A DNA stretch of 64,000 bases from Hemiscyllium ocellatum (lineage: Eukaryota): the NCBI RefSeq assembly GCF_020745735.1, contig NW_026867863.1, positions 800,504 to 864,503 on the forward strand, written 5' to 3'. Of the stretch, positions 12,015 to 64,000 are shown piece by piece (position 1 is the first letter of the stretch; every line of letters begins with the position of its first letter). The notes below the pieces were generated by a model. It was not told the DNA's origin, searched no databases, and saw nothing but the letters and a program-made list of their open reading frames with translations. The position numbers and the translations under genes are program-made.

Positions 12015-12122
12015 GATCGAGCACTCCACAATCACCTGATGAAGGAGCGTCGGTCCGAAAGCTAGTGTGCTTCCAATTAAACCTGCTGGACAATAACATG
12101 GTGTTGAGTGATTTTTAACTTT
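12015..12122 (-). mobile_element. Short repeat (Penelope-associated terminus type)
   Basis: Antisense AAAAATCACTCAACACCATGTTATTGTCCAGCAGGTTTAATTGGAAGCACACTAGCTTTCGG; same family as 20355-20472. Confidence 0.6.
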
Positions 12123-12149
12123 GCTTTCCTAGTATATGCTTATAGAGTT

Positions 12150-20586: not shown

Positions 20587-20614
20587 CGGTTCTGCATTGA
20601 TCATAAATGCCGTG
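20587..20614 (-). promoter_or_regulatory. Degenerate D 3' 12-RSS, cluster A
   Basis: CACGGCA-TTTATGATCAAT-GCAGAACCG; aligns with 38316-38343. Confidence 0.75.
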
Positions 20615-20898
20615 TACCAACTGCACAGTCTTAAGGTTAATCATGTCCAACGCAAAAATGTTGTTTGAACTGCCTATGGAAGCAGTAAATCGTCCTTCAA
20701 TCGTTGGTGCACAGTTATTGTTGGATGAAGTTTGGTACCAAAGCAGCCACTCCAGGCCCTGCTCGGGAACTTGTCGGACCGAGTGCAGGTAGCAGCTGCA
20801 AAGATTGAACTTGCTGGTTTTACAGGTCAGTCTCAGGGTGCCTCTGGAAAGGCCAATCCCTGCCTCTGGATGAGTCAAAATAACCTTTTACTGGACAT
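20615..20898 (-). pseudogene. IGHV: VH exon fused to D-like remnant, cluster A
   Basis: Acceptor TTTTTTAAAG|AT GTC CAG TAA (stop); [47 protein letters not shown]; EDTAIYY region missing. Confidence 0.92.
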
Positions 20899-21890: not shown

Positions 21891-23039
21891 TGAGAATGTG
21901 AGTACATGTCACGAAACAGTTTGGACCCCGAGATTAGAAGTACCTCCTTACATTGCAGAATGTCTCTCCTTGCATCTTTTTTTTCTAATTGCTCCGACCC
22001 TAAAATGCATCGTAAAGGAAAGCTGTGTGCCTGAGAACCAAAAAATGATTTGGCAGTGATACCAAACACCCAGGTAACCTTTTGACAGAGCATCTAATGA
22101 ACTGGAACAGGCCAGTCCATGAGTTAAAAGTAAATCATCAACATGTAAACCATTGTAGGTAACTGTCTTGTACGTCAGGAGTGTTTGGTTAATTTAGATA
22201 GTATTACAATAATTATTACCATGAATGTAGGTTATAAACAGTACATTAATCTGTTCACTGGTGGCTCTGACATGGGCAGTTAACTCGTAAATATCAGCAA
22301 TAACTCGCCGTTACACTACATTAGTATTAACCATGTATAACGGGTCCTTCTAGTTTTAAAGAGATGCATGAATCAGAGGATGGTGCAACGAGTGATGTGA
22401 GTTTTAACCAATTCAAGTGTGTTAATTTACTTTGAGATGATAATAAATGATACTGCAATGTGCGATATGGGATTCATTAACTTCATATTCAGGAGCTTTT
22501 AAGATACTCAATAAACAGGCTGAACTAACCAGAACGTCATTGCATTCAATTTCCTGTTTTCTGGCAGTCTTACATTGAATGCTGTATTCAGTGACTTTCC
22601 TTTTTAAAGAAGAAATGCTACATGAAATTTGTCCATTGGGAGTAAACGGGCAAATATAATTTGTTCGGTAGAATTTTATCTTGGTTGATTCATTTTCCCT
22701 TTAATCAGCCAGATACAACGGTTGGCAGCAATTAAGCTGACTGCAGAAAAGGTCCTAGAGTTCCCAGGTTTATTTCCAGGAAGCATCTGAGTTTTTGCAG
22801 TGGATCAAAGATATTTTTGTCTCACTATTGACCAGTTGGTGGAAAGCCAACTGCGAGCCATAACCACTGCCTTCGCAGAAACAAATCTACACAGCAACAA
22901 TGCTGGAGAAAATTGTCTTTTTCAATTTTGTACCTTGGAGAACTCGTCCCACCTCTCATTGAATGAAATATTCGCAGAGTATCGGACACAATCTAAACAT
23001 CATCAGGTCATTCGAGGATCACTACAGCACTATTTAATA

Positions 23040-23350
23040 TTGAGAAAATCGTTAAATCGTCTCAGAGTCATGGAGTGATACAGCATGGAAACAGACACTT
23101 CGGTCCAACCAGTCCATATCAGTGATAATCCCAAACTAACTGATCCCACCTGTGTGTACTTGGGACATATTCTTCCAAACATTTGTTACAGGTTTATTTA
23201 TCCAAACGTCTTCTAACAATTTTAACAATACCCATCACCAAATCATCCCACATACAAACCATTCACTGTGAAAAAAGTTGTGTCCGTTATCTTTTTAAAA
23301 GTTTTTCTCCTCTTATTGTAAAAACATGCCCCCTACTGTTGAAATCCCCC
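23040..23350 (-). mobile_element. CR1 3' tail shared with cluster B (35640-35885)
   Basis: GAGTCATGGAGTGATACAGCATGGAAACAGACACTTCGGTCCAAC tail motif. Confidence 0.7.
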
Positions 23351-23364
23351 ACCATACGGAAATA

Positions 23365-25510
23365 ACGCCAATGTCTCTGTCAAAAATTGAAAACAATCCC
23401 AGCTCCAAACATTTACAACATATCACTATGGGTCTTGCATGAGTCCAAAAAGGATTGCCCCCTTCGAACAATGATTTCTAAACTTTGCTTGCGTATCTGT
23501 TGTGAAGGACGTTTTCCAATAACTTCTGAAGTGCAAATTTTTCACATCAATCGGATGAAAGTAACATTTCGTGTGTTACCCCTCACAAAAAAACAAGCAC
23601 GTTTGTTGACACGAGTTGCTCTGAGGAAGTTTATGATTGATACTTTTATATAACAAAAACATTTCCAATGTTGTGAGGGCTCATCTATCATCTGTGCAAT
23701 GGTCTGAATTTTAACTTTCGTCCAACTGCAGATGAAACTGACTGATCTGTGTAAAAGTACAGTCTGTGCCTTTACATTGTCAATATTTATTGCTGACTTT
23801 AGTTGAATAAATGGATGCTGTCCCTAGCATCGTCTGCCACCATGAATTACACCAGTAATTTCCACATCGCTAGCTGGAATGACAGGTGGAGTTTATTGAT
23901 ATGTGATATTTTTGAAACGAAAGCTTTAAAAATTTCCGGAATGAATCATGCCAATTAGATCCATTCAACTTTCCACTCATAGCTTTATAAACTTATATGA
24001 GGTCACCCCCCGAACTCTCACCTCCAGTGAAAAATGTTCCAGTCTATCTGGATTTCCGACGTTGACTCTGTTCCCTCACATTCTGCTGCTAAAGATCCTC
24101 CCGCCACCCCAGGTCCATAGAGTGTATTCGTTGTTACTAGTTCAAAGAAAAGAAAGGAAGTTGTCCCAACATATTGTTCAACTTTATTTGGCTTCGAATA
24201 CCATAAAAAATAAATGTTCATGTTATTGCTGCTTGATGGGAGAATGCCATGTACACTGAATCTGCTGAAATACCTCCAGCACCATCCTGAATCTGGTTCG
24301 CAGATTCACCTGTTGCTTACAAATGAAAGTACATATCAAGGAACAGTGAATATCGTCCACCAGCTACATACGCCCCCAATCCTCCCCGACCTGTACTTTG
24401 CACTTTGGAAATCCGTATTGTAAATAATCAGTTAGAAGAAGTGTTTATTTAAATAAAACTTGCTTAATTCATGTTGCTGATCTTGGCTGAATAAACGTAT
24501 GCTGCTGTCAGCATTTCTGGGGAAATTATCTGCATTTTTTTCATGTCGGTTTACATTGATGTTAAGTAACGAATCGTCAAAATGTCTTGAGAAACAACGT
24601 TTAGAAATGGGCCCATTTGCTCCCCAGGCATGCACCAACTGTTTGAATGTTGATACAATTTTGCCCCGACTTTTTCCCCAAAAAACATGATTTACAGCAT
24701 TTGAAATCATATCTATGTTGATATTGGATTAGACCCTAAGCAATGTTCACGAATCTTTATTTCAAGTGCTACCACCTGCAGGGTTACAGACAAAATGCTA
24801 CAAAGTGAGTGTCGGCTGGAAGGGTCTGTTTTCAGGTGGCACAGGTGCGATGGGTGAAGTGATCCCTCTCTGTCATGAAAGCTTTCTACAACTCTAAATC
24901 TATCTTTCCTCCTTTGTCTAATTAAGAGGATGCAATTCACATGGTTTATACCGGAAACAATCCAAGCCTTCGTTTCAATTATATCACAAATCAATAAACA
25001 CCACCTGATACTCTGGCTTGCGATGTGGATATTAATGGTCTAATTAATACTGACAGATGATGCCTGGGACAACATTCATTTATTCAACCATAGGCAGCAT
25101 TATAAATTAATAATGTGAAAAGCACAAACTGTAATTTTACCCAGTTTCCCCTGCAGTCAGACACACAATTCAGACCATTGCACAAAAGGTAGATGAGCCC
25201 TCACAACATTGGAAATGATTTTGTTTGATAAAAGAATCAATCTTAGACTTCCTTAGAGCAACTTGTTTCAAGAAAGTTGCTTGATTATTTTTATGTGTGG
25301 TAACATACGAACTGTTACTTTATTCTGACTGATGTGAACCATTTGCACTTCAGGTTATTTGAATATATTCACAGCATATACGTGAGCAAATTTTAGTAAT
25401 CATTGATTCAAAGGGGACTATTTTTCTTTGGACTCAAGCAAGATCCATAGTGATATTTTGTAATGTTTTGAGCTGTGATTGCTTTAAATGTTTGACTAAG
25501 ATATTGGCGT
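23365..25510. repeat. Long imperfect inverted repeat (arms ~23365-23950 and ~24940-25510, spacer ~1 kb)
   Basis: ACGCCAATGTCTCTGTCAAAAATTGAAAACAATCCCAGCTCC vs reverse complement ACGCCAATATCTTAGTCAAACATTTAAAGCAATCACAGCTC; similarity runs along both arms. Confidence 0.85.
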
Positions 25511-25852
25511 AAAGTACAAAACCTCACCATTTACTCTAACATGAAACTAGCAACCACTGTGAACCAGGAAGACGATGGTTCAGAATTTAACAAGGCCCTA
25601 GCAAGGTTCGTGTAATGGACAGACAAGTGATACATGACATTTACCAAAAGCATTTATGAAATGATTAATTTAGATCGGAAGAATGCAAGAACACAAATAC
25701 ACGGCTCTGGCTGCATTTCAATATACTATCAATTACTTTTCGACTACAAATTAAAATAATTGTGTCTTTGTTTATACTTAATACACCCTATCTTGTTCCG
25801 GGGCTAAGATAGTTTTTTTTTAAATTTATTTCACTCAAGAATATATATACAA

Positions 25853-25881
25853 ACACACACACACACACACACACATATATA
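25853..25881. repeat. (AC)n(AT)n microsatellite
   Basis: Read directly. Confidence 0.95.
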
Positions 25882-26089
25882 TGCTGCATTTTGCCTCTGT
25901 TTGGACCAAACTTGGTTTGGTGTCAGCTTGTATCACTCGAGCTGCTTTTTCAGGAAGTGAATCTCTCCATCTGTTATGTCAAAATACACTGTTCCTGCTT
26001 TTATCGAAATAAATCCTGACCATACCATTTAAATTCAGAACCAGTTATCTTGTATTTATTCAGTGGAAATGAACAGAATATGAACAGCC

Positions 26090-27110
26090 TGTTATTGATC
26101 GGTGGGAGAGGGAGTTAAAGTGTTCAGAAAAGGGGCCGTGGGGTTGATTGGCGCAGGTGTCTCAGAGATGTTCTTTGAAATGATCCACAAGTTGACATCC
26201 TGTCTCCCTGATGTAGATGACACCAAATCTGGTGGTACAGACTCAGACGGAGGTGAGGGGGAGGCGTAGGCGCAGGTTTTACACTTCCTTCGGTGGCAGG
26301 GGAAGATGACGGGGTGGGGAGTGGGCTGGTGGCGGGCGTGGACCTGACGAGGGAGTCGTGGAGGGAATGCTGTCTGCAGAATGCAGATAGTGGTAGGGAG
26401 GGAAATATACCCCAAGTAATGGGGTCTGCTTGCAGGTGGTGGAAGTGGTGGAGGATGATATGATATATGCAAGGTCATTGCGGTGAAGGTGACGACCAAG
26501 AGGGCTCCCTGCTGCGATTGGAGGGGGTGCGGGTTTCCAGGGCATTGTCGACCAGGTGGGAGGGGAAATTGTAGTCTTTGAAAAATGAGGTTATCTAGTA
26601 CGTTCTATGGTGGAATTGGTCCTCCTGGGAGCAGATGCGGTGGAGGCAAGGGAATTGAGAAGAAGGGATTTTTTTTACAGAAGGTAGGGTGGGAGGAGAT
26701 GTCGTCCAAGTAGCTGTGGGAGTCAGTGGGCTTGTAGTAAATGTTTAGTCGTTAATTCGTGATGGAGATGGAGTGGTCTAGGAATGGGAGGGAGTGTCCC
26801 AGATGGTCCCTGTGAAGTTGAGGTCAGGGTGGAATGTTTTAGTGAAGTTGATGCACTGTTCAAACTCCGAGATGAAATGGCGCTGATACAGTCATCAATG
26901 TAGCGGAGGTAAAGGTGGGCAATGGTACCGGTGTAGCTGTGGAAGATTGACTGTTTCACATATCCGACGAAGAGGCAGGCATAGCTTGGGCCCATCCGGG
27001 TGCCCATGTCTACTCCTTTAGGTTGGAGGTAATGAGAAGATTGGAAGTAAAAGTAGTTGACAGTTGAGCTGTTCAGCCAAGTGAATGAGAGTGTGAGAGG
27101 CAGGGTACTG
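26090..27110 (-). mobile_element. Penelope-like retroelement remnant (RT and GIY-YIG-side fragments)
   Basis: YLQPKGVDMGTRMGPSYACLFVG...LYLRYIDDC and FPCHRRKCKTC. Confidence 0.85.
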
Positions 27111-28339
27111 CTTGCGTTAGTGTAACAGGAAAAACTGGTGAGCTTCAAGGCCTGTGTCATGGTGTTTGCATGTGTACAAGGCCTTGTCATTCTGTTCATT
27201 CTGGGGCTTATCAATAGCTCGCACTTTTTATGGAACTGCAAGGACAATGGCTGGTAACTCAGAAAAAACAATGTTTTAGACTTCCGCTTGAAGCAAATTT
27301 TGACCAGAACGTTAAATACCACAAAGCTCACTGTGGGAAATGTCAGTGACTTCAAATTTTAAGAATATTTGAAACTCTGTTAAAACTAGGCATTTTCAAT
27401 CATAGTTTCTGAAATAATCGAGAAAATACTTAGCCGTTAGAATTAGCCCTTTCAACTATGATTTGCAAAGTTTGAAGCTATACAGTGCTGTGCTTTATTT
27501 CAATTCAATGTCGGTCAGCGTTAGACAAGACGAGGTGATCTCTCCATATATGGATTCTGTTAATCGGACACACCGACATACCTGTCTCTACGAAATTGTT
27601 TGCTTAATTGATGAAAATCTATTAATAGATCAAACAGAATGTATTCAGCTGGGGAGGTGATAGATACAGAAAACAGAATCTAAAACTGGGAACATTAAAT
27701 CTGAAGTGAGAGTAACAAGAAGTTCCTCAAAGACAGGAATAGGTGCAGTCGATATGTTCCAGACGGTGGTGATTCGAATGGGTTTGTTACATAGTCGGGA
27801 GACTCGTCCAATGACGTCCTGGTATCGGACCACAAAACAGCGATTGAAAGGTCGTTTCAATGCACATTTTACACTTTGTGCCCTGATATAGGCCACATTG
27901 GCAGATGTTTCCGCCAGATTGTGTCCCCTGAGTTTATTTTCTGATGAGAAGTGAGATGTTTGCTAGCTGCTGGCACATACAAACAGGAAGTTGTGTGTCA
28001 GCTGAGAATGATACACCAGGCGCTACATTCTGTATTATCAGCACAAACAGTCATCTTGCCTCTGTGGGTGAACACACAGACAGTATCAAGAACAAACGGC
28101 TGTTGGCCTCAAAATTACATTCAATTCGATTCCCTTTTTCCAGAATAAAAACGAAGCGTCAAAAGATTATTTAAGTCATAATAAATTACCTATCTGAGAG
28201 ATACGAAGAGTTACCATTGGGCCAAAGGAGGTAAACGACAATATGTAGTTTCGCTCATAAATCTATGTTTAAAAGTAGAAAGCATGAGGGAAGTTAATAA
28301 ATAAATCTAAGAGACAGCATTCATTAACAGTTGGAATTG

Positions 28340-28990
28340 CAAGTTTTAAACATTAAAATTCAGCATGTCTTTGGTGGAAGTGATATCATATCGGACATGG
28401 TTGATTCTGCTTTCCGAAGAGGTAATGAGATTTGTCAACGAGTGTCAAAAATGAATGAAATGCTTCTTGACTTCAATGAGGTTTTTGACAAGAGCTTGTA
28501 TCTTCAGTAAAGTAAAGAGTTCATGGGATCTTTTGCAGTTTGGCAAATGCATCGAAGGTTTAGTTGGTGGCAGAAGGTCGAGGGTAATGGTCGACGGTAA
28601 TCTTTATGAAGACATATCTTGTCCAGTGGCTTGTTATAAGACTTTGTGTTGGATTCTTTGCTGTTTGCAGTGTATATTAATGATCTCGTCAAGAATGTAG
28701 CAATTTTGATGAGTAAGATCAAAGATAAGGTGAAAAACGTTTAGTTTTGCAATTGAGGAGGAGGAAATCCTTGGAATACAGTATGACATCGATGACTTGC
28801 CTTTCCGACAGAAGAATGAATTGAAAACGAAATATTATATCCTGAGGTCTGTGAAATAAAGCATTTTCGAGACTAACAATTTAAGCAAATATACGATGCA
28901 CAGTTGGAACCTACAAAACACAAAAGGTAAGCGATCTCTTGTTGTGCATAGCCACATCATGTGGTGAGTTAGGTGTGGACGATAGTTTCC
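28340..28990 (+). mobile_element. Degraded CR1 RT fragment
   Basis: GAGGTTTTTGACAAG...GTGTATATTAATGATCT (FDKV / YINDL remnants) with many stops. Confidence 0.6.
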
Positions 28991-29229
28991 AGGTATTGTG
29001 GTTTGACTATTAATTCAGGAAACTCGGGTCTCAGACCGCAGTGCTGCCACATCAGGTCGTGAATTATGGTTTTTAATTAAACAACTCATTCGAGGAATAG
29101 GTTCCACAGATATTCCCATGCTCTGTGATAGATAGCATAACATATCAGTGCAAAATGTAAGGCTGCAGCATTCACAACAATCTTTAGCATGAAGTGCCAA
29201 TTGTATTATCCATCTTGGCATCTTCCAAT

Positions 29230-30760
29230 GACCACCAATATTACAGATACCTGTCTTCAGGGAAATTGCTTCCCTCCATGTGATTTCAAGACATTGTTGG
29301 GACTCTCGTTACTGCAAATGCTATGGAGCCTGACAAAATTATTACAATAATACTGTTGACTTCTGCTAGCCAAGCAGTCCCAGTACAGCTACTACACTGG
29401 AATCGACTCGACAACATGGAAAATAGGTCAGGCATGTCCTGTGCACTGAAAATAGGACAAACCATCCTGACGAATTACTGCCCCATCAGTCCAAGCCCAA
29501 TCTTGAGTTAGGTGTAGGAAGGTGCTATCAACGATGCTATCAAGCAACAATGGCCCAGCAATAATCTGCTCGGTGATGCTCAATGTGGATTAGAAAGGCC
29601 AACTCAGCTCTTGTCTGAATTACAGACTTGATGCAAACATGGAGAAAGAACTGAATTCCAGAAATGATGGGAGAGTGACAGCCTTTGATAATCAAGTCAA
29701 ATTTGACAGAGTAAGGTATTATGGAGCCCTGGCAAAACTGGAATCAATGGATATTAAGTGACAAACTCCCCGCTGCCTGGACAGACATTGGACGATGGTT
29801 CTGGTTGCTGAAGGTCACTCAATTCAGCCGAAGCAAATCTCTGTCAGAGTTCTTCAAGAAAGTGTCCTCGGGCCATCCATCTTCAGCTAATTCATCAATG
29901 ACATTTCCTCCATCAGATGGTTAGAAATGAAAAGTGCACTTTTTTTGACTCCTCGCACACGGAATTAGTCCACAGTCAAATGCCAGAAGATCTGTACAAT
30001 ATCCATACTTGTGCTGACAATTGGCAAGTAGCATTCACACCACAAAACTGCCAGACAATAATCAGCGACCATCAGAGACAATCTAACTAAAACCCCATGA
30101 TATTGTTACCATTATTGAATCTCTCACCATCAACATCCTGGGTTTTTTTGTTGATTAGAAATTGAATTGGAAACTTCATATAAATACATTGGTTGTAAGA
30201 GCAGGCCAGAGGCTAGGATTACTGCAGCGAGTAACTCACCCTCCTGACTCGCATAAAGAATTGACTGTAGAAAAGACAGAAGTCAGGACTGTAATAGCAC
30301 AGCTCTACCTTTTATTGGATAGGAGCATGTTTAACTGCTGTCAAGAAGCTTGGCAATGTCCAGGACAAAGCATCCCACTTGATCAGCAGCATGTTCACAA
30401 GCGTCCATTGCCCCAGATCTGATGTTCAGTTCCTGCCATATGCATTATCTAAAAAACTACACTGCAGTCATTTGGCCACTTCCTTAGAGAGTAACTTCCT
30501 ACTCCCAATTGCAACTCGAAAAACAAGAGCAGGAGATACATGGGAATAACAGAACTGTAAGCTCCTTCTAAACCACTCTGCATCTTGACATGGAAATATA
30601 TCATCTATCCTTTACTGTAGCTGGGTCAAAATCTGGCATTCCCTTCCTCAGGGCACGTTGAACATGGTATTTCAGAAACGCAACTTAATGCTATCTTCTG
30701 AAGGATACCGACAAACGGCTAATAACAACCACCACATCCCATGAGTCAATAAAATAACTA
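29230..30760 (+). mobile_element. Degraded non-LTR retrotransposon RT (CR1/L2 group)
   Basis: NYCPIS remnant, GATAATCAAGTCAAATTTGACAGAGTAAGG (D-K--FDRV), TTCATCAATGAC (FIND). Confidence 0.65.
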
Positions 30761-37817: not shown

Positions 37818-37866
37818 ATGATTGTATCGACAATTTTTCTCAGTTTGTTACTGATTTTCTTATCAT
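37818..37866 (+). CDS. IGHV: VH leader exon (MIVSTIFLSLLLIFLS), intact
   Basis: ATG, hydrophobic core, phase-1 donor T|GTGAGT. Confidence 0.92.
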
Positions 37867-37993
37867 GTGAGTGTTTTTTGTTCAAGTCTTTCTTTGATAC
37901 TGTCTCAATGTTAGTCTACCTCAGGAATGTCAAAGACTCAGCCATCATTTCATCAGCGTTAATGTTGCAATTTAATTTGTTTTCTTTTCAAAG

Positions 37994-38315
37994 GTGTCCA
38001 GTCAGAGGTTGTTTTGACTCAGCCAGAGGCAGAGACTGGCCCTCCTGCTGGTAGCCTGAGACTGACCTGTAAAACCAGCGGGTTCAATCTTGGCAGCAGC
38101 TACATGCACTGGGTCCGACAAGTTCCCGGCAAGGGCCTGGAATGGCTGCTGTACTACTATACTTCAGTCGACAAAAACTATGCACCAGCGATATTGGGCC
38201 GATTTACTGCGTCCAAAGAGACTTCAGACAACATTTTTGTGTTGAACATGGGAAACCTGAAGATCTAAGACACGGCCATCTATTACTGCGCAAGAGCAGT
38301 GGGTAGGTGGATATT
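37994..38315 (+). pseudogene. IGHV: VH exon with germline-fused D sequence; one TAA in FR3
   Basis: (C)[52 protein letters not shown]...[38 protein letters not shown]; no V 23-RSS after YYCAR. Confidence 0.95.
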
Positions 38316-38343
38316 CACTGCAATTATGATCGATACAAAAACC
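38316..38343 (+). promoter_or_regulatory. D 3' 12-RSS
   Basis: CACTGCA-ATTATGATCGAT (12)-ACAAAAACC (consensus nonamer). Confidence 0.9.
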
Positions 38344-38651
38344 TTTCAGACCCTATTGTTTGCAACACGTCAGTGATTATTTCTACAAACCGTCTTAACT
38401 TGCAGTGCAGTATTAGTTCTCTGGGCTTCTGTGCATGTTTAATTTGTAAAAGTGGTGATAATTATTGATACACCAATTGGTTATTTTGAGAATCAGCTCA
38501 AGTGTTACTCTGTGAAATATAAAACAACATAAAAATTTATTAAGAATGATCAGAATTCACTAGCGCATGTGATGTAGCTTCATTGTGACTTAATATTGCC
38601 AGTGGTTCCGAAAATGTAATGGGAGATTTTTGGATTGTTTTATGCAGAGCT

Positions 38652-38690
38652 AGTTATTATGTGGCCCAGTGCAGACAATGTAACACTGTG
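38652..38690 (+). promoter_or_regulatory. J 23-RSS
   Basis: AGTTATTAT (6/9 match)-23 nt-CACTGTG (consensus heptamer). Confidence 0.85.
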
Positions 38691-38738
38691 CCTATCTTGA
38701 TGACTGGGGCCAAGGGACCATGGTGACAGTGACTTCAG
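38691..38738 (+). CDS. IGHJ: JH segment (YLDDWGQGTMVTVTS), intact
   Basis: WGxG motif, donor G|GTGAGA. Confidence 0.95.
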
Positions 38739-45000: not shown

Positions 45001-45689
45001 AAATAGTTGCAAGTCAAGGTGGAGTCTAATTTGGAGGTAATCATTCAGATGAAGCATTTTCATGCATGCACGCCCTTATCCTCAAAGATCACAATTTTGA
45101 AACATGTTGCCAGGGACATGTTAGAATACAAATTAGAAGCTGAATTAGGCACCTCGGTCACTTTAGAATGCTATTGTATTCATGGGATCATCATAAATCC
45201 TGCTGCTCACCAGTCTTTCCAACAGCCGATAAAATTGAGCCCGATTCTTTACTGTTCAATGAACGAATGGTGAACCATTGGAATTCTCCGCCACTAAATT
45301 GCTTGAGGTTAAAACATTAAGTGATTTCAAGAAGGAGATAGATTCCTTCAATTCTGAAGATATACTACGAGTATGTGGAAAAAAAGACAAACAGGGTACA
45401 ATATCGGTTGAAAGTCATGAGAACGACGAATGGGGCATGGTTTGTAAATTTGCACATGAAACCAAAATTGGTGCTATAATTGGCAATGAACGTTATCTAA
45501 AAGAGATCGTGATCAATTGGGCAATTGGGCAAATGGGCTGAAGAGTTGCAATTGGAGTAGAGATTAAATGAAAACGACCTTTAAAGAAGATAAAGCAGGT
45601 CACAACTTGCAGAGATAATTGTAGGGCACTGGATCGTGTTGTCCAACAGAGAGACCTGGGAGTTCAGAAGCATCGATTCTTACAGCGTC

Positions 45690-47590
45690 ATATAGTCATA
45701 GAGATGTAGAGCAAGGAAATAGACTCTTTGTTCCAACTCGTCCATGCCGACCAGACATCCCACCCCAATCTAGTCCCACCTGCCAGCACATGGCCCATAT
45801 CCCTCCAAACACTTCCTATTCATATAGCCATCCAAATGCCTCTTAAATGTTGCAATTGTATCAGTCTCCACCACTTGCTCTGGCATCTCATTCCATACAC
45901 GTACTACCTTCTGTGTGAAAAAGTTGTCCCTTATGTCTTTTTGTGTCTTTCCCCCTCACCCTAAACCTATTCCCTCTAGTTCTGGACTCCCCGAACCCAG
46001 GAGAAAATAAACTTTGCCTATTTACTCTAACCATGTCCCTCAGGATTTTCTAAACCTGTATAAGTTCAAGCACTAAGTCTCTGAAGTTCCAGGGAAAACA
46101 GCCCCAGCCTGTCCAGCTTCACCCTCTAGCTCACATCCACCAATCCTGGCAACATGCTTGTTAAATCTTTTCTGAACCCTTTCAAGTTCCACATCATCTT
46201 TTCGATAATAAGGAGACCAGAATTGCACACAATGTTCCGACAGTGGCCAAAACAATGTCCTATACAGCCACAACATGTCCTCCCAACTCCTGCATTCAAT
46301 ACTCTGACCAATAAAGGAAAGCATAACAAACGCCTTCTTCACGATTCAATCTACCTGCGACTAGACTTTCAAGGAGGTATTAATGTGCACTCCAAGTTCT
46401 CTATGTTCAGCTACACTCCCTCGGACCTGACCATTAAGTGTAGAATTTCTGCTAAGATTTGCTTTCATAAAATGCAGCACCTCGCATTTATCTGAATTAA
46501 ACTCCATCTGCCACTTCTCAACTCATTGGCCTATCTGGTCAACGACCTGTTGTTTAATGAGATAACCCTCTCCGTTGTCCTCTACACCTCCAATTTGGTG
46601 TCATCAACAAACTTACTAACTGTACCCCTTATGCTGGCATCCAAACCAATTATGTAAATGACAAGAAGTAGAGGCCCCAGTACCGATCCTTGTGGCACTC
46701 AACTGGGAACTGGCCTCAAGTCTGAAAAACAACTCTCCACCAAGACCCTCTATCTTCTACCTTTGAGCAAGTTCTGTATCCAAATGCTGAGTTCTCCCTG
46801 TATTCCGTGAGAGCTAACCTTGTTAATCAGTATCACATGGGGAACCTTGTCAAACGCCTGCCTGAAGTCCATATAGATCACATCTACCACTCTGCCCTCA
46901 TAAATCATTTTTGGTAATTCCTCAAAAAACTCAGTCAAGTTTGTGAGGCAGGCTTTCCCATACACAACATCATGTTGACTATCCCTAATCAGTCCTTGCT
47001 TTTCCAAATCCAGGTACAGCCTGTCCCTCAGGATTCCCTCCAGCAACTTACCCACAACCTACGTCAGACTCACTGGTCTATAGTTCTATGGCATTTCCTC
47101 CATAAACAGTGGCAACACGATAGCCAACCTCCAGTCATCCGGCTCTTCACCTGTAACTATCGTTGATACAAATATCTCATCAAGGGTCCCACAATCACTT
47201 CTCTAGATTCCCACAGAGTTTTAAGCTACACCTGATCAGGTCATATGGATTTATCCATCTTTACCCGTTTCAAGATATCTAGCAATGTCTTTAATAACAT
47301 GGACATTTTACAAGATGTCACTGTGCATTTCCCTATGTCTTTATCTTCAATATCCTTTTTTACAGTAAATATTGACGCAAAATACTCTCGCCATTTTCTG
47401 CGGCTCAACACAAAAGCCACCATGTTGATCATTGAGGGGCCCTATTCTCTCCCTCGTTACTTTTTTGTCCGTAATGTAATTTTAAAAACTCTTCTGATTC
47501 TCCTTAATTCTATTTGCCAAAGCTGTCTCATGTCCCCTTTTTGCACTCCTGATATCCCTCTTAAGTATACTCCTACTTCCTTTATACTCT
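45690..47590 (-). mobile_element. CR1 LINE, RT region to 3' tail
   Basis: LIRDSQH..VYGKACLTNLTEFFEE..VDVIYMDFRQAFDKVPH; HCVQFWSPYYRKDDVELERVQKRF. Confidence 0.9.
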
Positions 47591-47594
47591 CACT

Positions 47595-47990
47595 GGGTAG
47601 TAATGTTGAATACAGGGACCAGGGGGTTCAGATACATAAATTCTTGAAAACATTGCCTCAAGTAGACAGTGTGTTGAAGGTTTGGCACATGCTCCTTCAT
47701 TGGTCAGAGCATTGAGTGCAGGAGTTGAATCTTCTTTCTGTAACTGTACCAGACATTGGAATGAAATGCCGGAGGAAGTGGTAAATGCAGAGACAGGTAC
47801 AACACTTACAAGACATTTGCACAGGTATAGGAATTGGATAGGTTCTGATGGATGTGTGCTCATAGCAGACAAATGGAATTAGTTTAATTTGAAAACACTG
47901 GTCAGCATGGACAAACTGTACTCTGACCAATAAAGGAAAGCATAACAAAGGAAATGTTCTGTGCTATGTGGCTTTATGACTCTATGGCTT
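47595..47990 (+). mobile_element. Rearranged CR1 3' fragment
   Basis: TGGAATGAAATGCCGGAGGAAGTGGTAAATGCAGAGACAGG...GACTCTATG. Confidence 0.65.
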
Positions 47991-48034
47991 CATTGTGCAG
48001 TTTGCTCAACGTTGGTAAGCAAGTGAGGGGATAG

Positions 48035-48280
48035 ATTGGGAGTATGAGATTGTTTGAGTTAGTAGGCTTTGGCTGGCCATTTACCAGTACGGAAAATTTA
48101 GCATTGCCAATTCACCTATCTGCATATTATTGGATTGGGGGAGGAAACCGGAAGAAACCCACGCAAACACGGGCAGAATGTGCAAACACCACACAGAGTC
48201 GCCTGAGGTGGGAATTGAACCCGGGTCTCTGACGCTGCGAGGCAGCAGTGCTAACCACTATGCCACCGTGCTGCCCACAG
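48035..48280 (-). mobile_element. HE1-like SINE
   Basis: Antisense GGGCAGCACGGTGGCATAGTGGTTAGCACTGCTGCCTCGCAGCG head. Confidence 0.8.
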
Positions 48281-48689
48281 TTTCGTCAAATTGTGCTTGG
48301 TAAATGAGGGACCGTTTGAGTTGAAATACAGGAGGTCTATCTTTGCCAAGCTTGTTAGCGGAGAGATCAGCAGAGTGCCACGCTGCTGATTGGAGAGATG
48401 TGCAGGATGCCAGGCTCTTTCGAGAGCAGAAGGTCACTGTAATGCAGTGGCAGGTGGACTTGATGTCAAAATGCAAAGCTCAGAGTCTGGAGAAATGGAA
48501 TGAGGTAAAGGACAAATGCGAAAGGAGCTAGGATGCAGTGTGCACACGTTGACTTGGATAAGATGAGAGATCAGTGACCAAGGGCTGAGGTCATGCCTGG
48601 GTAGTGGGGTTCTGACAGAGGTTGTGAAAATGAGGGTGCCATGTCCAGTCAGGGCCAAATTCAACATGGACAGACGCAGGGTGGCAGCA

Positions 48690-50945: not shown

Positions 50946-51251
50946 AGACACCGTCTCCCCCCACGCTTTATGGCCTGGTCTCCTCCTGTGAGGACCACAA
51001 CACCGGTTCTCCGATCTTTGGTTGTTTGGCAATGGACTATTACCCTGATGTAACCAAGGTAACCTGGAAGAAAGGTGGGGAGTTAATCACGACTGGATTG
51101 AAGACTTACCGATCAGTAAGAAACAAGAGTGGAACCTATACCCAGAGCAGCCAGTTAACCCTGCCCGGGTCAGCAGTAGATTGCCCCACCAAAATCTACT
51201 GTGAGGTTCAACACAACGGGTCACACAAGAGCAAAGAAATGCCATGTCCAG
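50946..51251 (+). CDS. IGHM: IgM CH1 exon, intact
   Basis: TCTTTCTATCGTAG|(E)[101 protein letters not shown]|GTAAGT; C1-set Cys/Trp intact. Confidence 0.95.
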
Positions 51252-51529
51252 GTAAGTGTTGTGGGAACTGAGATCAACAGAACATCTGTGATTAACATGA
51301 ATGAGGCATTATTGATAACCATTCTCACAGAAGGATTTTATACAGCACAGGAAAAGGCCCGTTGGTCCATCCAATCCACACCTAAAAATAACAGCCACCT
51401 AACTGTGCCAGTTTCATGTGCCAGCACTTGATCCGTTGCCTTGTGTGACATGCCTTTGCAAGTATGGATCTAAATATTTCATACATATTATGAGGGGCTC
51501 AATCTCTACATAACTTGTCAGCACTGAGC

Positions 51530-52680
51530 TCCAGACTCACATCACCCTCTGTTTGAGATTGTTTTGACTTGAGATCCATCCTAAAACTCCTGGCCTTGCC
51601 TTCACCCTGTGCCCCTGAGGCATTGATCTCTCCCTCAAGGGGATTGTTTTTGTCCAGTTCAGCCTGCCTGGAATTATTTGAGGTATAGACATCGCAATCA
51701 TCTTCTCCTTAATTCTCCTCTGCTGCAAGGATATCCCCCGTCTGTCTAATCTTTTCATAAATAAAATACTTCAACCCAGGCAAAATCCTTGCAAAGCTCA
51801 TTAATGCTGCTTTCAGCGTAATCAAATTCTGTCGATAGCATGCACACAGCACTTCAGTATGGCCTAATCAATGTGTTATTAAGTTCCAGCATCATCTCCC
51901 TACTCTTCATTGTCAATGTCTCACCTAAAATGAACAAATATCCTCCCGAACTTCCTCGCCTCTTTATCCATATGACGCATTAATATAGGGGATCAGTGGG
52001 TGCGAACACCAATGGCCCTCAGCTATTTCCAGGTTTCCACCATTCAAAACGTAATACCTCGCAGTTTCTTCTGCCGCAGTGCAATACTTTACTCTTATCT
52101 AGAGTGATTTCCATTTGCAACTTCTCTTCACATATAATCAATCCTTGTATGACGTCCTGCGCTCTAAAACTATCATGCTCATGACTTACCAACATGACAA
52201 TTTTCCTTTCATCTCCGAAGTTGCTGATTAACCTTCCTACATTCCATTCTCAATCATTGGTATATAAGAGAAACAGCAAGGAAATCAGCACTGATCCCTG
52301 CAGAACATCATGAGACATAGATTTACAGTCACGCAGACACCTTATGACCATTATCCTCTGCTCCCGACCACTCAGCCAATTCTCGATCCAATTTGGAAAT
52401 TTAACTCTGATCCTATTGGCTCTGATTATTGCTGTCATTTGGTCATTGATTTATCTGTCTGAAAACTACCACCAAATTGTTAAGATATGATTTTCTCTCA
52501 ATAAAACCATGCTGGAAGTTGTTGATTGATCTTGCAAATGAAGACAAATTCTGCTCCTCAATAGTTCCAATAGTTTCCCTACCACTGAGACTAGCTTGAA
52601 AGATCTGCATTTTCATTGTTTATCCCTTCCTTCCTCCTGCATAACAATGCAACGTTGACTGATCTGCACTCACATGTCAG
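51530..52680 (-). mobile_element. Degraded CR1 LINE in the intron after CH1
   Basis: NWIENWLSGREQRIMV..VLQGSVLISLLFLLYTND. Confidence 0.75.
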
Positions 52681-52751
52681 ACAGTAATTCTAAACCATTG
52701 TCAGCGACACAACTATTGCATCCTTTGCATCACTCAACAGCTTGTTTTATA

Positions 52752-53251
52752 NNNNNNNNNNNNNNNNNNNNNNNNNNNNNNNNNNNNNNNNNNNNNNNNN
52801 NNNNNNNNNNNNNNNNNNNNNNNNNNNNNNNNNNNNNNNNNNNNNNNNNNNNNNNNNNNNNNNNNNNNNNNNNNNNNNNNNNNNNNNNNNNNNNNNNNNN
52901 NNNNNNNNNNNNNNNNNNNNNNNNNNNNNNNNNNNNNNNNNNNNNNNNNNNNNNNNNNNNNNNNNNNNNNNNNNNNNNNNNNNNNNNNNNNNNNNNNNNN
53001 NNNNNNNNNNNNNNNNNNNNNNNNNNNNNNNNNNNNNNNNNNNNNNNNNNNNNNNNNNNNNNNNNNNNNNNNNNNNNNNNNNNNNNNNNNNNNNNNNNNN
53101 NNNNNNNNNNNNNNNNNNNNNNNNNNNNNNNNNNNNNNNNNNNNNNNNNNNNNNNNNNNNNNNNNNNNNNNNNNNNNNNNNNNNNNNNNNNNNNNNNNNN
53201 NNNNNNNNNNNNNNNNNNNNNNNNNNNNNNNNNNNNNNNNNNNNNNNNNNN
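52752..53251. other. Assembly gap, exactly 500 N
   Basis: Run of N. Confidence 1.
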
Positions 53252-56200
53252 AAAGCTACTCATAAATGTGAGTATTTAATGTCTACATTGGCAAATTTAA
53301 TTAATACTTATTGGAATCTATCTGCTAAACCTTTAGCAAAACTGAACCAGCAAACTGCTTAACTGTGCACACCCCCAACACAAAACTTTGCTGCCTCTCA
53401 TTGACTTTTCAAATGCACTGCTCCATTCCAAATAGCAGACCACCCTTTGTCATTCGTAGAAATTTGTTTCTGATGGATGTAAGTGGTTTTTCTGTACCTC
53501 CGTCATTTTTGGTGGACTCATATCAAGTTACACTTTGGAATTTGATAGTAAGGCCAAGATTGTTTATATTGATCCAGTTTCCCAGCCCTTCGTGTTCTTG
53601 AGAATTGGAATGGGACTGGGTTCTATCAGCCCTCTAAGGATAGGCTGCAGGGTCAATAGGTGGATAAGAGGTTGGAAGATGCCTGGGGAAGGAAGGAGAT
53701 TCAGTGCCTCCCTTATTACCACCTCTGTATCTCCGTAATATTTTATTGATCCCAAATTAGGGAACGGATAGCCACTCAGGTGGTCAATGTAGAGTCTGTT
53801 GCCGCCAATGCTGGCAGTTTACTTGCAGTAGGTGGGTCTTCCATTGTGTGAGTCCTCCTCCTGCATCCTAGATGCACGCCTGCAGGATGCCCCTGCTAAA
53901 GAAGTACCTCATGGCTCACAACAGGGTAGCCCATCTGCATACTTGAACAGTCTCCTGTCCATGGCAGCGATCATTACAGGAACTGGAAATCAAAGTAATT
54001 GAGTGAAAGATGCCGTGAGGCCTCGAGTGTCCACAACATTCCCAGGACCAGGTTGGCAGGCCCTCCTGAGGCCATTAATGATTCAACAAAATCCCCCATT
54101 TGGTTCATGGGCAACGGGGTAATCTTTCTCCGAGGAAGAGTATTGTGATTACTGCTGTTTCAGTGAAGAGTGGCCACGAGATAAAATCATTTGCATTCAG
54201 TGTTGTACACTTTTGTGTCTTTTTTTGTGAAATTCTTTATAATTCCTCGAAATATTCTTAATGCACTGTTTGCTTCATAGCATAGTGATTTTCTACATAG
54301 GATGACAGAGGGAATACAGAACAGAAACAGAGCATTTGGCTTAATCAGTTCATGTCAGTGGTTATGCTCCACTCAAGCTGTTTCAAATCTTTTGTCATCT
54401 TAGTCGCCCATTACAATTCTCTATTCCTATCCCTTCCAAGTGCTCACCTAGATTCTTTGAAATACATCTAAACTATTGATGTGAACTATTCTGTCTGGTC
54501 ACATATTCCCCATTCTGGTCATTCTTTCAGTGAGGAGGTTTCTTCTGAGGCACTGTCTTATATTTTCAGCCTCTAATTATATTCTACCCCATAGAGAAAT
54601 GTTTTCTTGGTACGTTCCCTTTTCAAAATCTTTCATATTTTTAGAACTGTCAGCCTTCTTTTCAAGAGAGAAGTGAACAGCACGACAATTATTCCCTGAT
54701 ATACACAGCCATAAACTTGTTTATCATTTTGTAAACCTTCTCTTCACTTCTTCTCGTACATTCTATAATGCGTCAACTGGAACTGCAGGCAATAACCTTA
54801 ATTGTAGTCAACCAATTTTTATAAGGACCCTACTTTCAAATCTATCACTTTAGAGATAAAGCTTAGAGCTTTGTTTGCATTTTTATGGTCTTTGGAACCA
54901 TTGATAAAATTGTTAGTGACTGATGTAATTGTCTTAGATCCCTTTGTTTGTCTCACTCACTTAAACGTGCATATTTGAACAAGACATAACACCTTACGTT
55001 TATGAGTGTGTGGTTATTCATTTGCTAATTATTTGGCCATACTGGAAGTTAATTATTGACAGGTTGCAACTTCTTGTATTCCTCAGAGTTGGCTATCTTT
55101 CAACATTCCTCGTCAAATTTGGTGTCTTTGAAATGCTAAACATTTTTGTAATAATTACAGACAATATTTAATTTGCAGTTTTACTTGGTTTTGATTTTTT
55201 GGCTTAAGTACCTAGAGAGGTGCAGTAATCTGCACAGTAAAGTAACAACGAAACGGAAAATGACAGACAGATAAAAATTATTACCAACACAGGGCTAATT
55301 AATAGGCTCTGTGAACTGCAAGAACAAAATAGGGAATTATTTTTACACGAATGATATGGAGAGATTATCCGTAGTGTAATTACTTTTTGATCATTTCTTT
55401 TGGTTGCATTTTATTTCCCCAGGTCTTTCTGTGCGACTGGTATCAAATTGAAAGGGCACCCACCCTCCATTTTAAACTAACTGATGGTAAAAAGAAATGA
55501 TTTACGAAGCCATCGCTCCAGGCTTATACATATCCGCAGCCACCTAGAGTAATGCATGGTGTGGCTGATTAGGCTGTGGCTGATTTCCCTGCAGCGTTGG
55601 AGGCTTAGGGGTGACTTTATAAATGTTCATCAAATCATGAGCGGCATGGAGACTGTGAATATAAAATTGCTCTTCCCTGGGGTGAGCAGAGTCTCACTTT
55701 AAACCTATGCTCGTGAGTGGAGGTTTAGGGTGAGAAGGGGAAACGATGAAAGTACCTTAGGAGTGACTTTTTCATGCAGAGGAGGGGGGTATTTGGAATG
55801 AACTGCCAGAGGAAGTGATGGAGGCTGTTGCAATTTCAACATTTAGAAAGCATCTGAATGTGTATATGAACAGGAAGGGTTTAGAGGGATATGGGCCAAG
55901 TACTGGCAAATGGGAATAGATTAGTTGAAGATATCCGGTCAACATGGACGAGTGAGACCAAACGTTTGTTTCCAAATTGTACATCTCTATGATTCTATGA
56001 CTCTACTCCTTTGCTGTTAATGTACCCGGAGAATCTCTTTGGATTATCTTTAACATTATCTACCAAGTCTTTCCCATTTTTCCTTTCATCACCTCCTCAC
56101 CTCCCTGTTTAGAATGCTCCTACATCTCTTGTACTCTTTGATATTCACTTGATCTCATTTATCTATGTCTATTATAAGAATCGTTCTTCTTCTTAACCAG

Positions 56201-59105
56201 AGCCTCAATATCTTTATTTCTCCAGTATTCCATCCTCTTACCAGCTTTACCTTGACTCTAACAGGATCATCAAGCCTCTAAACTCTTATTATCTCACTCC
56301 TAAAAGCCTCGCTCTTGCTGGCCATCTCTTTAGCTGCAGAAAGTCTACTCCAATCAACCTTTGAAAGTTTTTGTCTCATACTATCAAAATTTGCCCTAGC
56401 CCAATCAAGAACATTAACTTATATATAATACCAATCTTTTCTATTGGTATTTTACAACTAATTAAATTAATGTCCCGGCCCCAAACTGCTCCCCTACTAA
56501 CCCTTCAGTCACTTGCCCTGCCTGAAACCAGAGGTTTGCTCATTCTATGGTAGTTTCATCGGCATATTAATGAAGACAAATTCCTTCAACACTTAACGGT
56601 TTCCTCAGCATCCGAGCTCTTAAGATCATGCCTGTCCCACTTTATGTTTGGAAGGTTAAAATTTGCTGTTATTAAAATCCTAAAATTCTTACGTATACAT
56701 GAGATCTGTCAACATATTTGCTACTCAATTTCATTCAGACCACCAGGGGACTATTACAATAACATCAAATTAATTGTGCTTTCCTTATTTCTGAGTCTCA
56801 TCCACATAGGTTTACTGGACCATCCCTCACAAATACCTTCTGTTAGAAGAGCTCTAATACTTCACCACAATTAAAATTGCTTCCAATCTCCTTTTAACTC
56901 TTCCTACTTCTGCTGTACCTTTGATGGTGTGAGTTGCCCTTGAGGACTTCGAACATAAATTATTCAATTTACTGGTGATGGTTAGTACCTGAAAATAAAG
57001 ATACTATGCGTGACTTGGTGATGGGAAGTAAATATGTTACCTTGTGTGGAAGGAAGGTTCTGGATATAAACAACATTTTTGTAAATAAAACAAACTCCAT
57101 TCTGTCTGCTCAGTTTTTTTCGTACACTGGTTTACCTTCAGCATATTTTCCTTATATTTTGATTAGTTCAAATTCATCTCATCCGCTGTTTTATACTTGT
57201 CAGCGCTTTGTTAACGGGTGTTTGCTGTTTCACAATGTATGTCGCCTTATCGTGTACGCTCTGGGAATTCAGTATTTGTAGTGTTTGTTGTTTCAACCTG
57301 TGCCTTGGTCTATTAGGCAAAATTACAGAAAAATGTTAATAGCAATTTAAGTTAAAATGTTAGGATATCGGAAGAACAGCTAAGCGCTTCAAAATATAAC
57401 AGAGGGTTTTTGAGAAAAGACATGGAAAGCAGCAGGGTTTCCAGTCCGTTTGATCGCTGCCTTCCCTTATCGAAATCAACCTGTGATTTATCATTTTTGA
57501 GGATTGTTGTCCATTAATATTGGTGCATCAGATAGATCTCAGTCTCGAGCGGGTGTGACATGCCTCTTTGTTTTATGATGAACTCAGGGGTACATATAAT
57601 ATTAAGGGTGTAAATCCAAAGTGGTGCAGGAGCAGAGGATCCTCCGTTATATGTGCATAAATCAGTGAATGTACCATGACAGGTGGATGGAAGAACAATA
57701 AAACTTACTTCAAGTACGCTGTAATTATGTTAAACTGAAATAAAACAGTCGCTTGTCTCACCTGAAATAAAGCATCCAGTTTCAGAAGCCACATTTTTAA
57801 AATACGCAAATCTATGAGACAGGCTGCGTGCCGGATTCACAACACTGTTCCTGGGATGATGTACCTTACGGTTTCTGAGAAATTGGAACTGTTCCCCACT
57901 GCTGAACATGTGAATAGTTGCTATGATTGGTTCTCAATTCCATCTTGCGTCATATAGATTGCAACGGTTGAATATTTCTAGCACTTCTTGAGCTCTGCCT
58001 TGTCTGATCGACATCGACCACTGATTTATTATTTTTGAGGGCTTCTGTTCAGTAATATCCCTGAGTTAGAGAGACCTCAGTCTCTTTTCCTGGGATTTGA
58101 CAGATATGGTGTTTCAAATAGATCCCAGAAATTGTTCTCCGTGACATTTAAATGTGAGAAAAACCCCAGTTCTGAGAATTCGCTCTTGGATTGTGCACGT
58201 GTTGTTTCTGAATACCTGACTGAACGGTGACATTTTTGGCTGATGAATGTTTCGTTGGGTGTGTAAGGTGGTGATTTGTGCATAACTAATCCACGCTGTT
58301 GCAACTTTTGGAGTAAATTTAATTTAGACAATGTAGAGTAAAGTTTCAATCTCCGTTGCCTGCCTTTTATAGGCTTCTGGCGGATCAACGCTCCAAATTT
58401 GTATCATTATGTATATCAAGGCTGTGACCGTTAATGCGAAAGAGGAAAAGTTCTCTAATCATTTTGTTTCCGGTGTGTTCCACGAGGCATATCGTGATAA
58501 GTGGGCCACGTGGTGGCGCAGCATTCACCTAAATGACTGGATGAAACACAACCAAACAAAATAAGTGAAGGTATTTCGCTGGGAAAGGAGTGTGGGGACG
58601 TGAGAAAATGTGTTATTACTGACTGACCTTGAAGCAACAATTAAGCAAACTCAAGGTTAGTGCATATTCATTCGAGATTAATTAACCATTTTAGAAGGCA
58701 TTTTGTATCCAAAACGTTGATGTAAAAGATAACAGAAGCAAATACTGTGGCTGGATGCCGCATTGAGACAAGAACGCATGCGCTGTGAGCTGTGAACTTT
58801 CTGTGTATCTGTAACAGTCACCAGAAATGGAATACAATGGCTCATCACCATTTTGAATAATGAACAAATAAAAACAAAACAAATAGGCTTCAAACAAAGG
58901 GGAAGCTACAAGTTCTTTCAACCACAATCATTACAACGATATCAAAGGATATAATAGGAAAACCCATCAATAATTGTCTCAGTTACACGCTGATAAACTG
59001 AAGTGATCTCAGCAAGTGAACAGTCAGCAACAGGGCTGATTGTCGATATGGAATTCAGCGACCTTGTTATGCAGATCAGGAAAACCTACGGGGTCGACAA
59101 CTCAT

Positions 59106-59114
59106 TCACTTTAC
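59106..59114 (-). pseudogene. TM2 exon, duplicate
   Basis: Same as 9114-9122. Confidence 0.78.
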
Positions 59115-59253
59115 CTGGAAAAGGGAGATAAAACAATGATGCAGATGCTTATGGTCAGGAGCATTCAGATTCAATTTTTATTCAATGGCACACTTAGAGA
59201 TTTCACAAAACATATTCGGCTGCTTGGCGTGTGAAAGATGTTATTATTCTGAC

Positions 59254-59382
59254 ATTCACCAGAGTGGCAGCAGCGCTGTAAAAAGGTACTCAGGAAGAAT
59301 AGGGTGATGAATGTGGAAGCAGTTGTACAGATGTTGCTGTTATCATCTTCATAATCTTCAATCCAAGTGTGATCTATTGAAC
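59254..59382 (-). pseudogene. TM1 exon, duplicate, same frameshift
   Basis: Same translation as 9262-9390. Confidence 0.88.
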
Positions 59383-59952
59383 CTACGAATATAAAGACGA
59401 GAGAACACACTTAAATAGTTAATTGACCCAGTCCGATCTATCTGCATCTAAGTTATGTAATTAGAGACCATTACATGTTCAGGAAGTAGTCAGACATTTA
59501 TCAAACGTGACTCTGTTAGCTGTATCTATTAGAGCATTACTGATTCTCAGCAGGAACTTACAAATTCTAACTGCACATGTTCTTTCATCACTGACTGTCA
59601 GAACATTTCAAATTACTTTTTCTTTTAATCTATTATTGAAGAATATTATTATTTGAGGAATGGATATTAGGAACGAGTATCGTAATTATTTCCTTATATT
59701 TTAAATATAGGATGAGCCCCTCATAATACGTGTGAAGAATTTAGATCCATACTTGCAAAGGCAAGACACACAAGGCAATGGATCAAGTGCTGGCACATGA
59801 GACTGGAATAGTTAGGTGGCTGTTATTTATAGGATGGACCAAAGAGCTTTTTCCTGTGCTGTATAAGGCGAATCTTTTAAAAATGTTATAAATAATGCCT
59901 TACTCATGTTAATCACAGATGTTTTGTTTATCTAATTTACCACAACACTTAC

Positions 59953-60248
59953 CCTGACATGGCATTTCTTTGCTCTTGTGCGACCCGCTGTGTTAAACCA
60001 GTAGATTTTGCTGGGGTAATCTACTGTTGACCCGGGCAGGGTTAATTGGCTGCGCTGGGTGTAGGTTCCCTTGTTGTATACCACTGATGGGTAAGTCTTC
60101 AATCCAATCGTGATTAGCTCTCCACCTTTATTAAAGATTACCTTGGTTATTTCAGGGAAATAGTCCATCGCCAAACAACCAAAGATCACAGAACCGGTAT
60201 CGTGGTCATGACAGGACAAGAGCAGGCCATAAAGCGTGGGGGAGACGG
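59953..60248 (-). pseudogene. IGHM: CH1 pseudo-exon, duplicate
   Basis: Same lesions as 9961-10256. Confidence 0.92.
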
Positions 60249-63200: not shown

Positions 63201-64000
63201 ATTGATCTCTTTGAAGCCGATATAACCCTCATTGCATTAGACCTAGTCTCAATACCAGAAACTTGGCTGTTCGTCCTATGTTCCCCTGAGATTCCATCAC
63301 CCCCTACATTTTTCAAAACAGCATACCTGATTGAATCGGTACAACCACAAAAGACTCCTGCACTAGGTGCCTACCTATCTTACATTTCCTGGAGTTAACC
63401 CATCTATGTGACAGTATCTGAGACATCGCCCCTTCCTATAACTGCCATCCATGAGATACTGTTGCTTCTAACTGTCTCTCCAACCGATCCATTCGATCTG
63501 GTAAGATTCGCATCAAACAGGACCTATGACAGATATAATCTGCAATAATGCTTAATCTCTCTTTAAACTCCCACATCTGACAAGAAGCACATACCACTCT
63601 ATTAAAGCCAATTTTTACTCCTTCGTAAGTTACAGAGCCAGAAATTAATACAGTCTTATTCCTCGAGAAAACACTGCCCCACACAAACTTTAGCAATTCA
63701 AGTCAGTTGATGATGATTTGTTTCTCAAGGAAAAGCCTGACACTTCCACGCTTGTCTAGAGATGCAGATAATCACTGGAGGCATTGAAAAGTATTTACAC
63801 GAATTGCGAATGGTTTCTTTCTGTGTAGTTTGGCTTCTTTTTCTCTGAACAAACAGTGTTACTTCTTAATCATATTGTGGGAATGAAGATTGCCTCATTT
63901 TTTAAAGCAGAAATCACACATTATACTTCCCTGGAATAAAGAAATATAATCTAAACTTAATGGAATATGGTGATTGGGATGTTTAAATTGTAAGTTATCA

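Follow-up and report, generated by a model that had tools for sequence, protein, structure and literature searches.

Cluster B, an IgM heavy-chain mini-locus of an orectolobiform (hemiscylliid-like) shark, occupies 37.8-51.3 kb on the forward strand of the window, by which we mean the whole stretch of 64,000 nucleotides from Hemiscyllium ocellatum that was analyzed. We found that the V segment of this cluster is directly followed by remnants of D1 and D2, and that J is still unjoined and retains its own RSS. The best explanation, to which we assign a probability of about 0.9, is that a double RAG-type join took place in the germ line of an ancestor, that the resulting VDD-J cluster was inherited, and that it has now become a pseudogene through a TAA codon in FR3. 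The V-D1-D2 join is a germline state, as judged from its orthology with a C. punctatum locus and its recurrence across samples.

Cluster B carries its own leader with an intron, a J segment, and Cmu1. The leader exon (37818-37866) consists of MIVSTIFLSLLLIFLS and a split Cys codon, followed by a GTGAGT donor, and it can be aligned to that of an unjoined V gene in C. punctatum (P0002; annotated protein start MIVSTLFLSLLLTFLSC). The leader intron (37867-37993) is retained, and its GT...AG borders are kept in all five of the aligned genes. The VH exon (37994-38296) matches the Pfam V-set domain (E = 1.5e-9), and its best relative is C. punctatum chiPu_0018910, with 91% amino acid identity. The YYCAR motif is read directly at 38281-38295 (TAT TAC TGC GCA AGA), and the 20 nucleotides GCAGTGGGTAGGTGGATATT at 38296-38315 adjoin it directly. 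A 12-RSS follows at 38316-38343, composed of the heptamer CACTGCA (38316-38322), the 12-nt spacer ATTATGATCGAT (38323-38334), and the nonamer ACAAAAACC (38335-38343). On direct reading against the unjoined clusters described below (L002 and L004), the V 23-RSS and the V-D and D-D intervening DNA are absent from cluster B.

The JH RSS (38652-38690) starts 309 bp downstream of the 12-RSS and comprises the nonamer AGTTATTAT (38652-38660), a 23-nt spacer (38661-38683), and the heptamer CACTGTG (38684-38690). Its nonamer has one change relative to AGTTATTGT, which is typical of the family as seen in three C. punctatum clusters. The JH coding segment, YLDDWGQGTMVTVTS, lies at 38691-38738, with a GT donor at 38739. 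By their counted spacers of 12 and 23 nt, the two remaining signals of cluster B are 12/23 compatible. A pattern scan of the whole window gave just one good 12-RSS inside clusters A and B (cluster A being the inverted partner discussed below), namely that at 38316-38343; the sole other 12-RSS-like match, at 32601, sits between the two clusters. The sequence-only reading had described this arrangement exactly, with J about 308 bp away. After a J-Cmu1 intron of 12 kb, the Cmu1 exon (50946-51251) is open and matches the Pfam C1-set domain (E = 6e-14). Nothing recognizable was seen downstream of Cmu1 in 51252-52751, and a gap of Ns (52752-53251) cuts off the remaining C region, Cmu2-4.

The origin of the 20 nucleotides was examined against two unjoined IgM clusters from the C. 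punctatum assembly, L002 and L004, in which the canonical V(23)-(12)D1(22)-(12)D2(12)-(23)J layout could be read. In both, V ends with TGTGCAAGAGAC, followed by CACAGTG, a 23-nt spacer, and a nonamer. D1 is ATACTACAGTGGGT in L002 and ATGCGACAGCGGGT in L004, with a 12-RSS on the 5' side and a 22-RSS on the 3' side; D2 is ATATAACTGGGGTGA in L004, with 12-RSSs on both sides, and J has a 23-RSS. The D2 of an H. ocellatum paralogue was also obtained: in a contig from sequencing run X1 whose match to the window starts at 38316, the sequence immediately upstream is ...CACAGTG ATATAGCTGGAGTGA, an unjoined D2.

The 20 nucleotides match germline D segments, D1 and then D2. The V-derived part of cluster B stops at AGAG, 2 nt short of the germline AGAGAC, so that the first nucleotide of the junction (38296) is the G from the trimmed V end. 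The next stretch, CAGTGGGT (38297-38304), is identical to the last 8 nt of D1 (8/8), which has lost 6 nt at its 5' end and none at its 3' end. The remainder, AGGTGGATATT (38305-38315), corresponds to the last 11 nt of D2 with 7 matches, 4 nt being trimmed from its 5' end; the 3' end is complete, as the RSS next to it took no part in a join. In the C. punctatum orthologue, the D2 remnant AGCTGGATTGT matches 9 of the 11 nt at the 3' end of D2. The lengths sum to exactly 20 nt, and zero N nucleotides are needed. With random 20-mers of the window composition, the chance of reaching the D1 plus D2 score was P = 0.0017, and the same simulation gave P < 5e-5 for the orthologous C. punctatum junction. 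The earlier assignment of the two remnants from the window alone agrees with this parse, since its D1 piece is the exact 3' end of D1 and its D2 piece, GGTGGATATT, falls inside the D2 remnant; the V-D1-D2-J layout with D2 between 12-RSSs, then cited as established for sharks, is the one found in L002 and L004.

The signal that follows the junction points to the same origin. The D2 3' RSS of L004 is CACTGCA-ATTATGATCAAT-ACAAAAACC, with an atypical heptamer and a nonamer equal to those of cluster B and a spacer that differs by 1 base, and the intron downstream of it is homologous between the two clusters. From these comparisons, the 12-RSS of cluster B is identified as the D2 3' signal.

A locus of C. 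punctatum, L001, on the contig with the best V-exon relative, shares synteny with about 20 kb of the window (88-92% identity) and holds both clusters in the same head-to-head inverted arrangement. Its cluster B reads TGT ACA AGA GCAGTGGGGAGCTGGATTGT CACTGCA-12-ACAAAAACA; that is, it has the same join, with GAA where the window has the in-frame TAA. The two junctions (38296-38315 in the window, 11685-11704 in L001) differ by 5 substitutions in 20 nt (75% identity), and the V exons are 92% identical. At the amino acid level, the junctions show one change, AVGRWI against AVGSWI, and these numbers are too small to interpret. Because the orthologous junction lies at the syntenic locus, the join is older than the split between H. 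ocellatum and C. punctatum.

The join also recurs in sequencing reads. In runs X1 and X5, which come from two H. ocellatum studies (one of which may be the source of the assembly), 343-nt contigs of single-copy-like depth cover 38068-38410, and with it the stop, the junction, and the RSS, without a single mismatch to the window. In further H. ocellatum samples from two studies, a share of 0.64-0.90 of the sampled 31-mers of the stretch was present. A run from another organism (organism C) spans 38262-38465 without gaps, and its mismatch counts equal those of L001; this run is probably C. punctatum, in a separate data set. The proposal of a germline-joined V-D-D with an unjoined J is thus borne out, both by the C. 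punctatum junction at the orthologous locus and by the matching contigs of two studies.

In H. ocellatum, cluster B has no uninterrupted reading frame through leader, V, and junction. An in-frame TAA, overlooked in the sequence-only reading, lies in FR3 at 38266-38268, 9 codons before the R of YYCAR (...GNLKI*DTAIYYCAR). This codon is GAA (Glu) in the orthologue and in the unjoined V genes, so that a single G-to-T change accounts for the stop. The TAA is not an assembly slip, because it was found in both of the H. ocellatum runs compared (X1 and X5), whose contigs equal the window. The read comparison at this codon reports the best-supported variants only, and a GAA allele may exist in the population. 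No further lesion was seen in the leader, splice sites, V, junction, RSSs, J, or Cmu1 of cluster B. Because of the in-frame TAA, the H. ocellatum copy cannot yield a productive chain and is a pseudogene. The suggestion of a half hard-wired CDR3 that can diversify only where D meets J therefore does not hold for this copy.

The inactivation was probably recent, because the V exon still carries a signal of constraint. Compared with the open C. punctatum orthologue, it has 12 synonymous and 12 non-synonymous differences, with dN/dS of 0.27 (binomial P = 0.003 against neutrality). Cmu1 is 92% identical to its C. punctatum orthologue at the nucleotide level, with dN/dS of 0.43, and the noncoding flanks of cluster B are 91% identical. 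These values suggest that purifying selection acted on the lineage of cluster B during much of the period after the species diverged; part of the low dN/dS could instead stem from gene conversion by functional V genes.

Among the alternatives, the one that survives best is that the lineage is a working, selected, semi-hard-wired IgM, an innate-like heavy chain whose CDR3 is fixed in its first half, and that the TAA is a null allele or a very recent loss in H. ocellatum. We regard this as possible but not as the probable reading. It is favored by the C. punctatum orthologue, in which leader, V, junction, J, and Cmu1 are open and both RSSs are present, and by the V dN/dS value. However, the TAA occurs in both H. 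ocellatum runs compared, gene conversion could produce the signal of constraint, and the C region past Cmu1 is not seen in either species, since L001 and L002 end at or before Cmu1. Moreover, none of the few RNA runs covered contained the cluster B V exon, which is weak evidence. If the lineage is used, rearranged reads would show the cluster B V and GCAGTGGG(G/T)AG(C/G)TGGA joined to J. In a fuller form, which we consider somewhat more doubtful, cluster B would be a conserved, selected hemiscylliid VDD-J IgM gene, intact in C. punctatum; the gene would give heavy chains in which CDR3 always begins with AVG(S/R)WI and diversifies at one junction only. It would be an innate-like partner of the joined nurse shark gene IgM1gj and would just have been lost in H. 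ocellatum, and the germline joins of clusters A and B may have arisen independently, each at the same two signals.

In the double RAG-type join that we prefer, two deletional steps would have taken place in the germ line of the ancestor. In the first, the V 23-RSS would have been joined to the 5' 12-RSS of D1, and in the second, the 3' 22/23-RSS of D1 would have been joined to the 5' 12-RSS of D2. The product is V (minus 2 nt), D1 (minus 6 nt at the 5' end, 0 at the 3' end), and D2 (minus 4 nt at the 5' end, 3' end intact), without N nucleotides. The D2 3' 12-RSS and the J 23-RSS are left, and one 12/23-compatible step would complete the VDJ exon. The joined gene has been passed down since before the split from C. 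punctatum, with V and Cmu1 constrained for much of that time, until the later change from GAA to TAA in the H. ocellatum genome made it a pseudogene. We infer that the agent was RAG in germ cells, because the joints are trimmed and N-less and a pair of RSSs remains. Trimmed joints without N nucleotides are the pattern given for germline joins by Lee et al. (PMC2193156).

A non-RAG origin, either as a primordial V-D gene that was never split or as a copy of a rearranged gene made through an RNA intermediate or gene conversion, is very improbable. The join itself is past and only its outcome is visible, which leaves some room for such an origin. However, the 20 nt are the trimmed ends of present-day D1 and D2 in the right order, and the signal that remains next to them is the D2 3' RSS, followed by a homologous intron. 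A retro-copy is ruled out, as the leader intron and the D2-J intron are both retained. Against a primordial V-D gene, noncoding trees show A, B, and the unjoined clusters diverging from a common point, so that the joined clusters sit among the split ones. The weakest alternative, that a somatic V-D-D rearrangement of a lymphocyte clone was captured in the assembly, is favored only by the somatic occurrence of VDD-J intermediates in shark lymphocytes and thymocytes (PMC2435157), and its probability is negligible: it is ruled out by the same join at the orthologous syntenic locus of another species and by its recurrence in several samples, with single-copy-like contig depth in two studies and with the 5 substitutions in the 20-nt junction indicating that the junction is old.

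The inverted partner, cluster A, lies on the reverse strand, with V at 20896-20630, J at 20087-20046, and Cmu1 at 10257-9965. It is not another allele of cluster B; it is an older pseudogene, far more decayed, and its junction is different and shorter. An ATG is missing, and stops are present. Its junction (20587-20640, reverse strand) reads ...AAGACT GTGCAGTTGGTA and then CACGGCA-12-GCAGAACCG, with a shorter D remnant than that of cluster B, and a 22-nt loss in H. ocellatum removes EDTAIYY at the end of FR3. Cluster A of C. punctatum retains YYC and reads TGT-GCAGTTGGTA-CACGGCA. A stop early in V occurs at the same codon in cluster A of both species, and because of this shared stop, cluster A was already dead before the species split.

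The D1 remnant of cluster A is the same as that of cluster B with one change; relative to cluster B, cluster A lacks 6 nt of the V end and 10 nt of D2. One ancestral join followed by two small deletions fits these data, and the 6-nt deletion of cluster A would sit between GCA repeats. Independent joins in the two clusters also fit. Noncoding trees of the 5' flank and of the J-C intron gave three clades (A, B, and unjoined) in a near-trichotomy; these trees are unrooted, as the whale shark locus L003, at 72-78%, diverges too far to serve as a root, and only the first is usable, because the C. punctatum cluster A segment in the second was partly mis-extracted and forms a long branch. In addition, only about 580 bp separate Cmu1 of cluster A from its TM1 exon (9382-9272, reverse strand), which is followed by a TM2 of two codons near 9120. 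This part of cluster A (9272-10257, reverse strand) is without Cmu2-4 and a secretory tail, and Cmu1 and TM1 are both frameshifted. The homology between clusters A and B ends at 9713 and 51511, respectively, which looks like a deletion breakpoint.

Several other features were observed in the window and in the data compared with it. A direct repeat of 10.7 kb (3255-14005 and 53252-64000) has 99.67% identity and an offset of 49,997 bp, and its second copy begins where the 500-N gap (52752-53251) ends. Either a tandem duplication of very recent date or a duplicated haplotype in the assembly would account for it. Relative to C. punctatum, the window has an insertion of 8 kb between the two V promoters (22285-30297) and one of 3.2 kb in the J-C intron of cluster B (45108-48286), the latter containing a reverse-transcriptase fragment at 46750-47055 (RVT_1, below the Pfam cut-off). 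In run X1, a contig with a depth of 6.4 joins 38294 to 38692 (...TGCGCAAG + TGGGTA + CTATCTTGATGAC...). This contig holds a complete VDJ in frame (CASGYYLDDWG), related to cluster B; its source could be a paralogue in which all segments are joined, or a clone in that sample that had undergone rearrangement. A second odd joint, from 38343 to 38686, was seen in run X5. In the unjoined C. punctatum cluster L002 (11280-11330), D2 is truncated (ATATAGCTG...) and runs directly into D2-J intron sequence. A deletion has removed the D2 3' RSS together with about 180 bp, so that L002 is probably unable to finish the D2-J step.

Cluster B belongs to the class of partially germline-joined (VDD-J) IgH clusters of cartilaginous fishes. 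Pseudogene groups G6-G8 of the nurse shark are reportedly treated by Lee et al. 2008 and Rumfelt et al. 2004. Partly joined VD-J and VDD-J clusters as well as fully joined heavy-chain clusters have been known in the horned shark since 1988, and they have been ascribed to RAG activity in germ cells (PMC2193156; PMC5192425; PMC4279169). As in the VD-J and VDD-J clusters of Heterodontus francisci (Kokubu et al. 1988, cited in PMC2193156 and PMC5192425), V is fused to D sequence in cluster B, and J is separate and has its RSS. Cluster B differs from them in that it comes from another shark order, its junction is parsed to the base and is orthologous in two species, and it carries a nonsense codon. 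The nurse shark IgM1gj, a joined VDJ heavy chain, and the NS4/NS3 light chains (PMC2193156; PMC4279169) likewise have trimmed joints, little or no N addition, and a fixed CDR3. However, they are completely joined and are expressed mainly in neonates, whereas cluster B is two-thirds joined, with one step left, and is inactivated. The chicken pseudo-VH genes (PMC2193156) are also germline V-D fusions, with copies multiplied by duplication; unlike cluster B, which keeps leader, RSS pair, J, and Cmu1, they are conversion donors without an RSS, a leader, or a J-C of their own.

Within the same shark family, 37 IgM clusters have been counted in bamboo sharks, and pre-joined D segments have been found in their IgNAR (PMC8692893). 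This is also partial germline joining within a mini-cluster, but in another isotype and with D joined to D, whereas V-D-D is joined in cluster B. We found no description of VDD-J IgM clusters of bamboo sharks in the literature. The earlier suggestion that the allele is undescribed in this species may thus be true, as no paper was found, but the class itself has long been known. In the whale shark, the annotation 'Ig heavy chain V region' in L003 (6465-6600; NC_063338.1) covers a VDJ that is completely joined in the germline: YYCARDWGGSLHYWGQETMVTVTA runs into a GT donor, and none of the RSSs remains. This gene is possibly the counterpart of the nurse shark IgM1gj.

As the class has been known since 1988 and the H. 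ocellatum copy is dead, the value of cluster B is that of a well-documented example, with a lead to the intact C. punctatum orthologue. Its new points are modest, namely its orthology between species and the signs that it was once constrained. The double join of RAG type can be reconstructed to the base, with trimming of 2, 6/0, and 4 nt and no N nucleotides. That its product was inherited across a species split with V constrained supports the view that partly joined immunoglobulin genes in sharks can be kept for function and are not instant junk.
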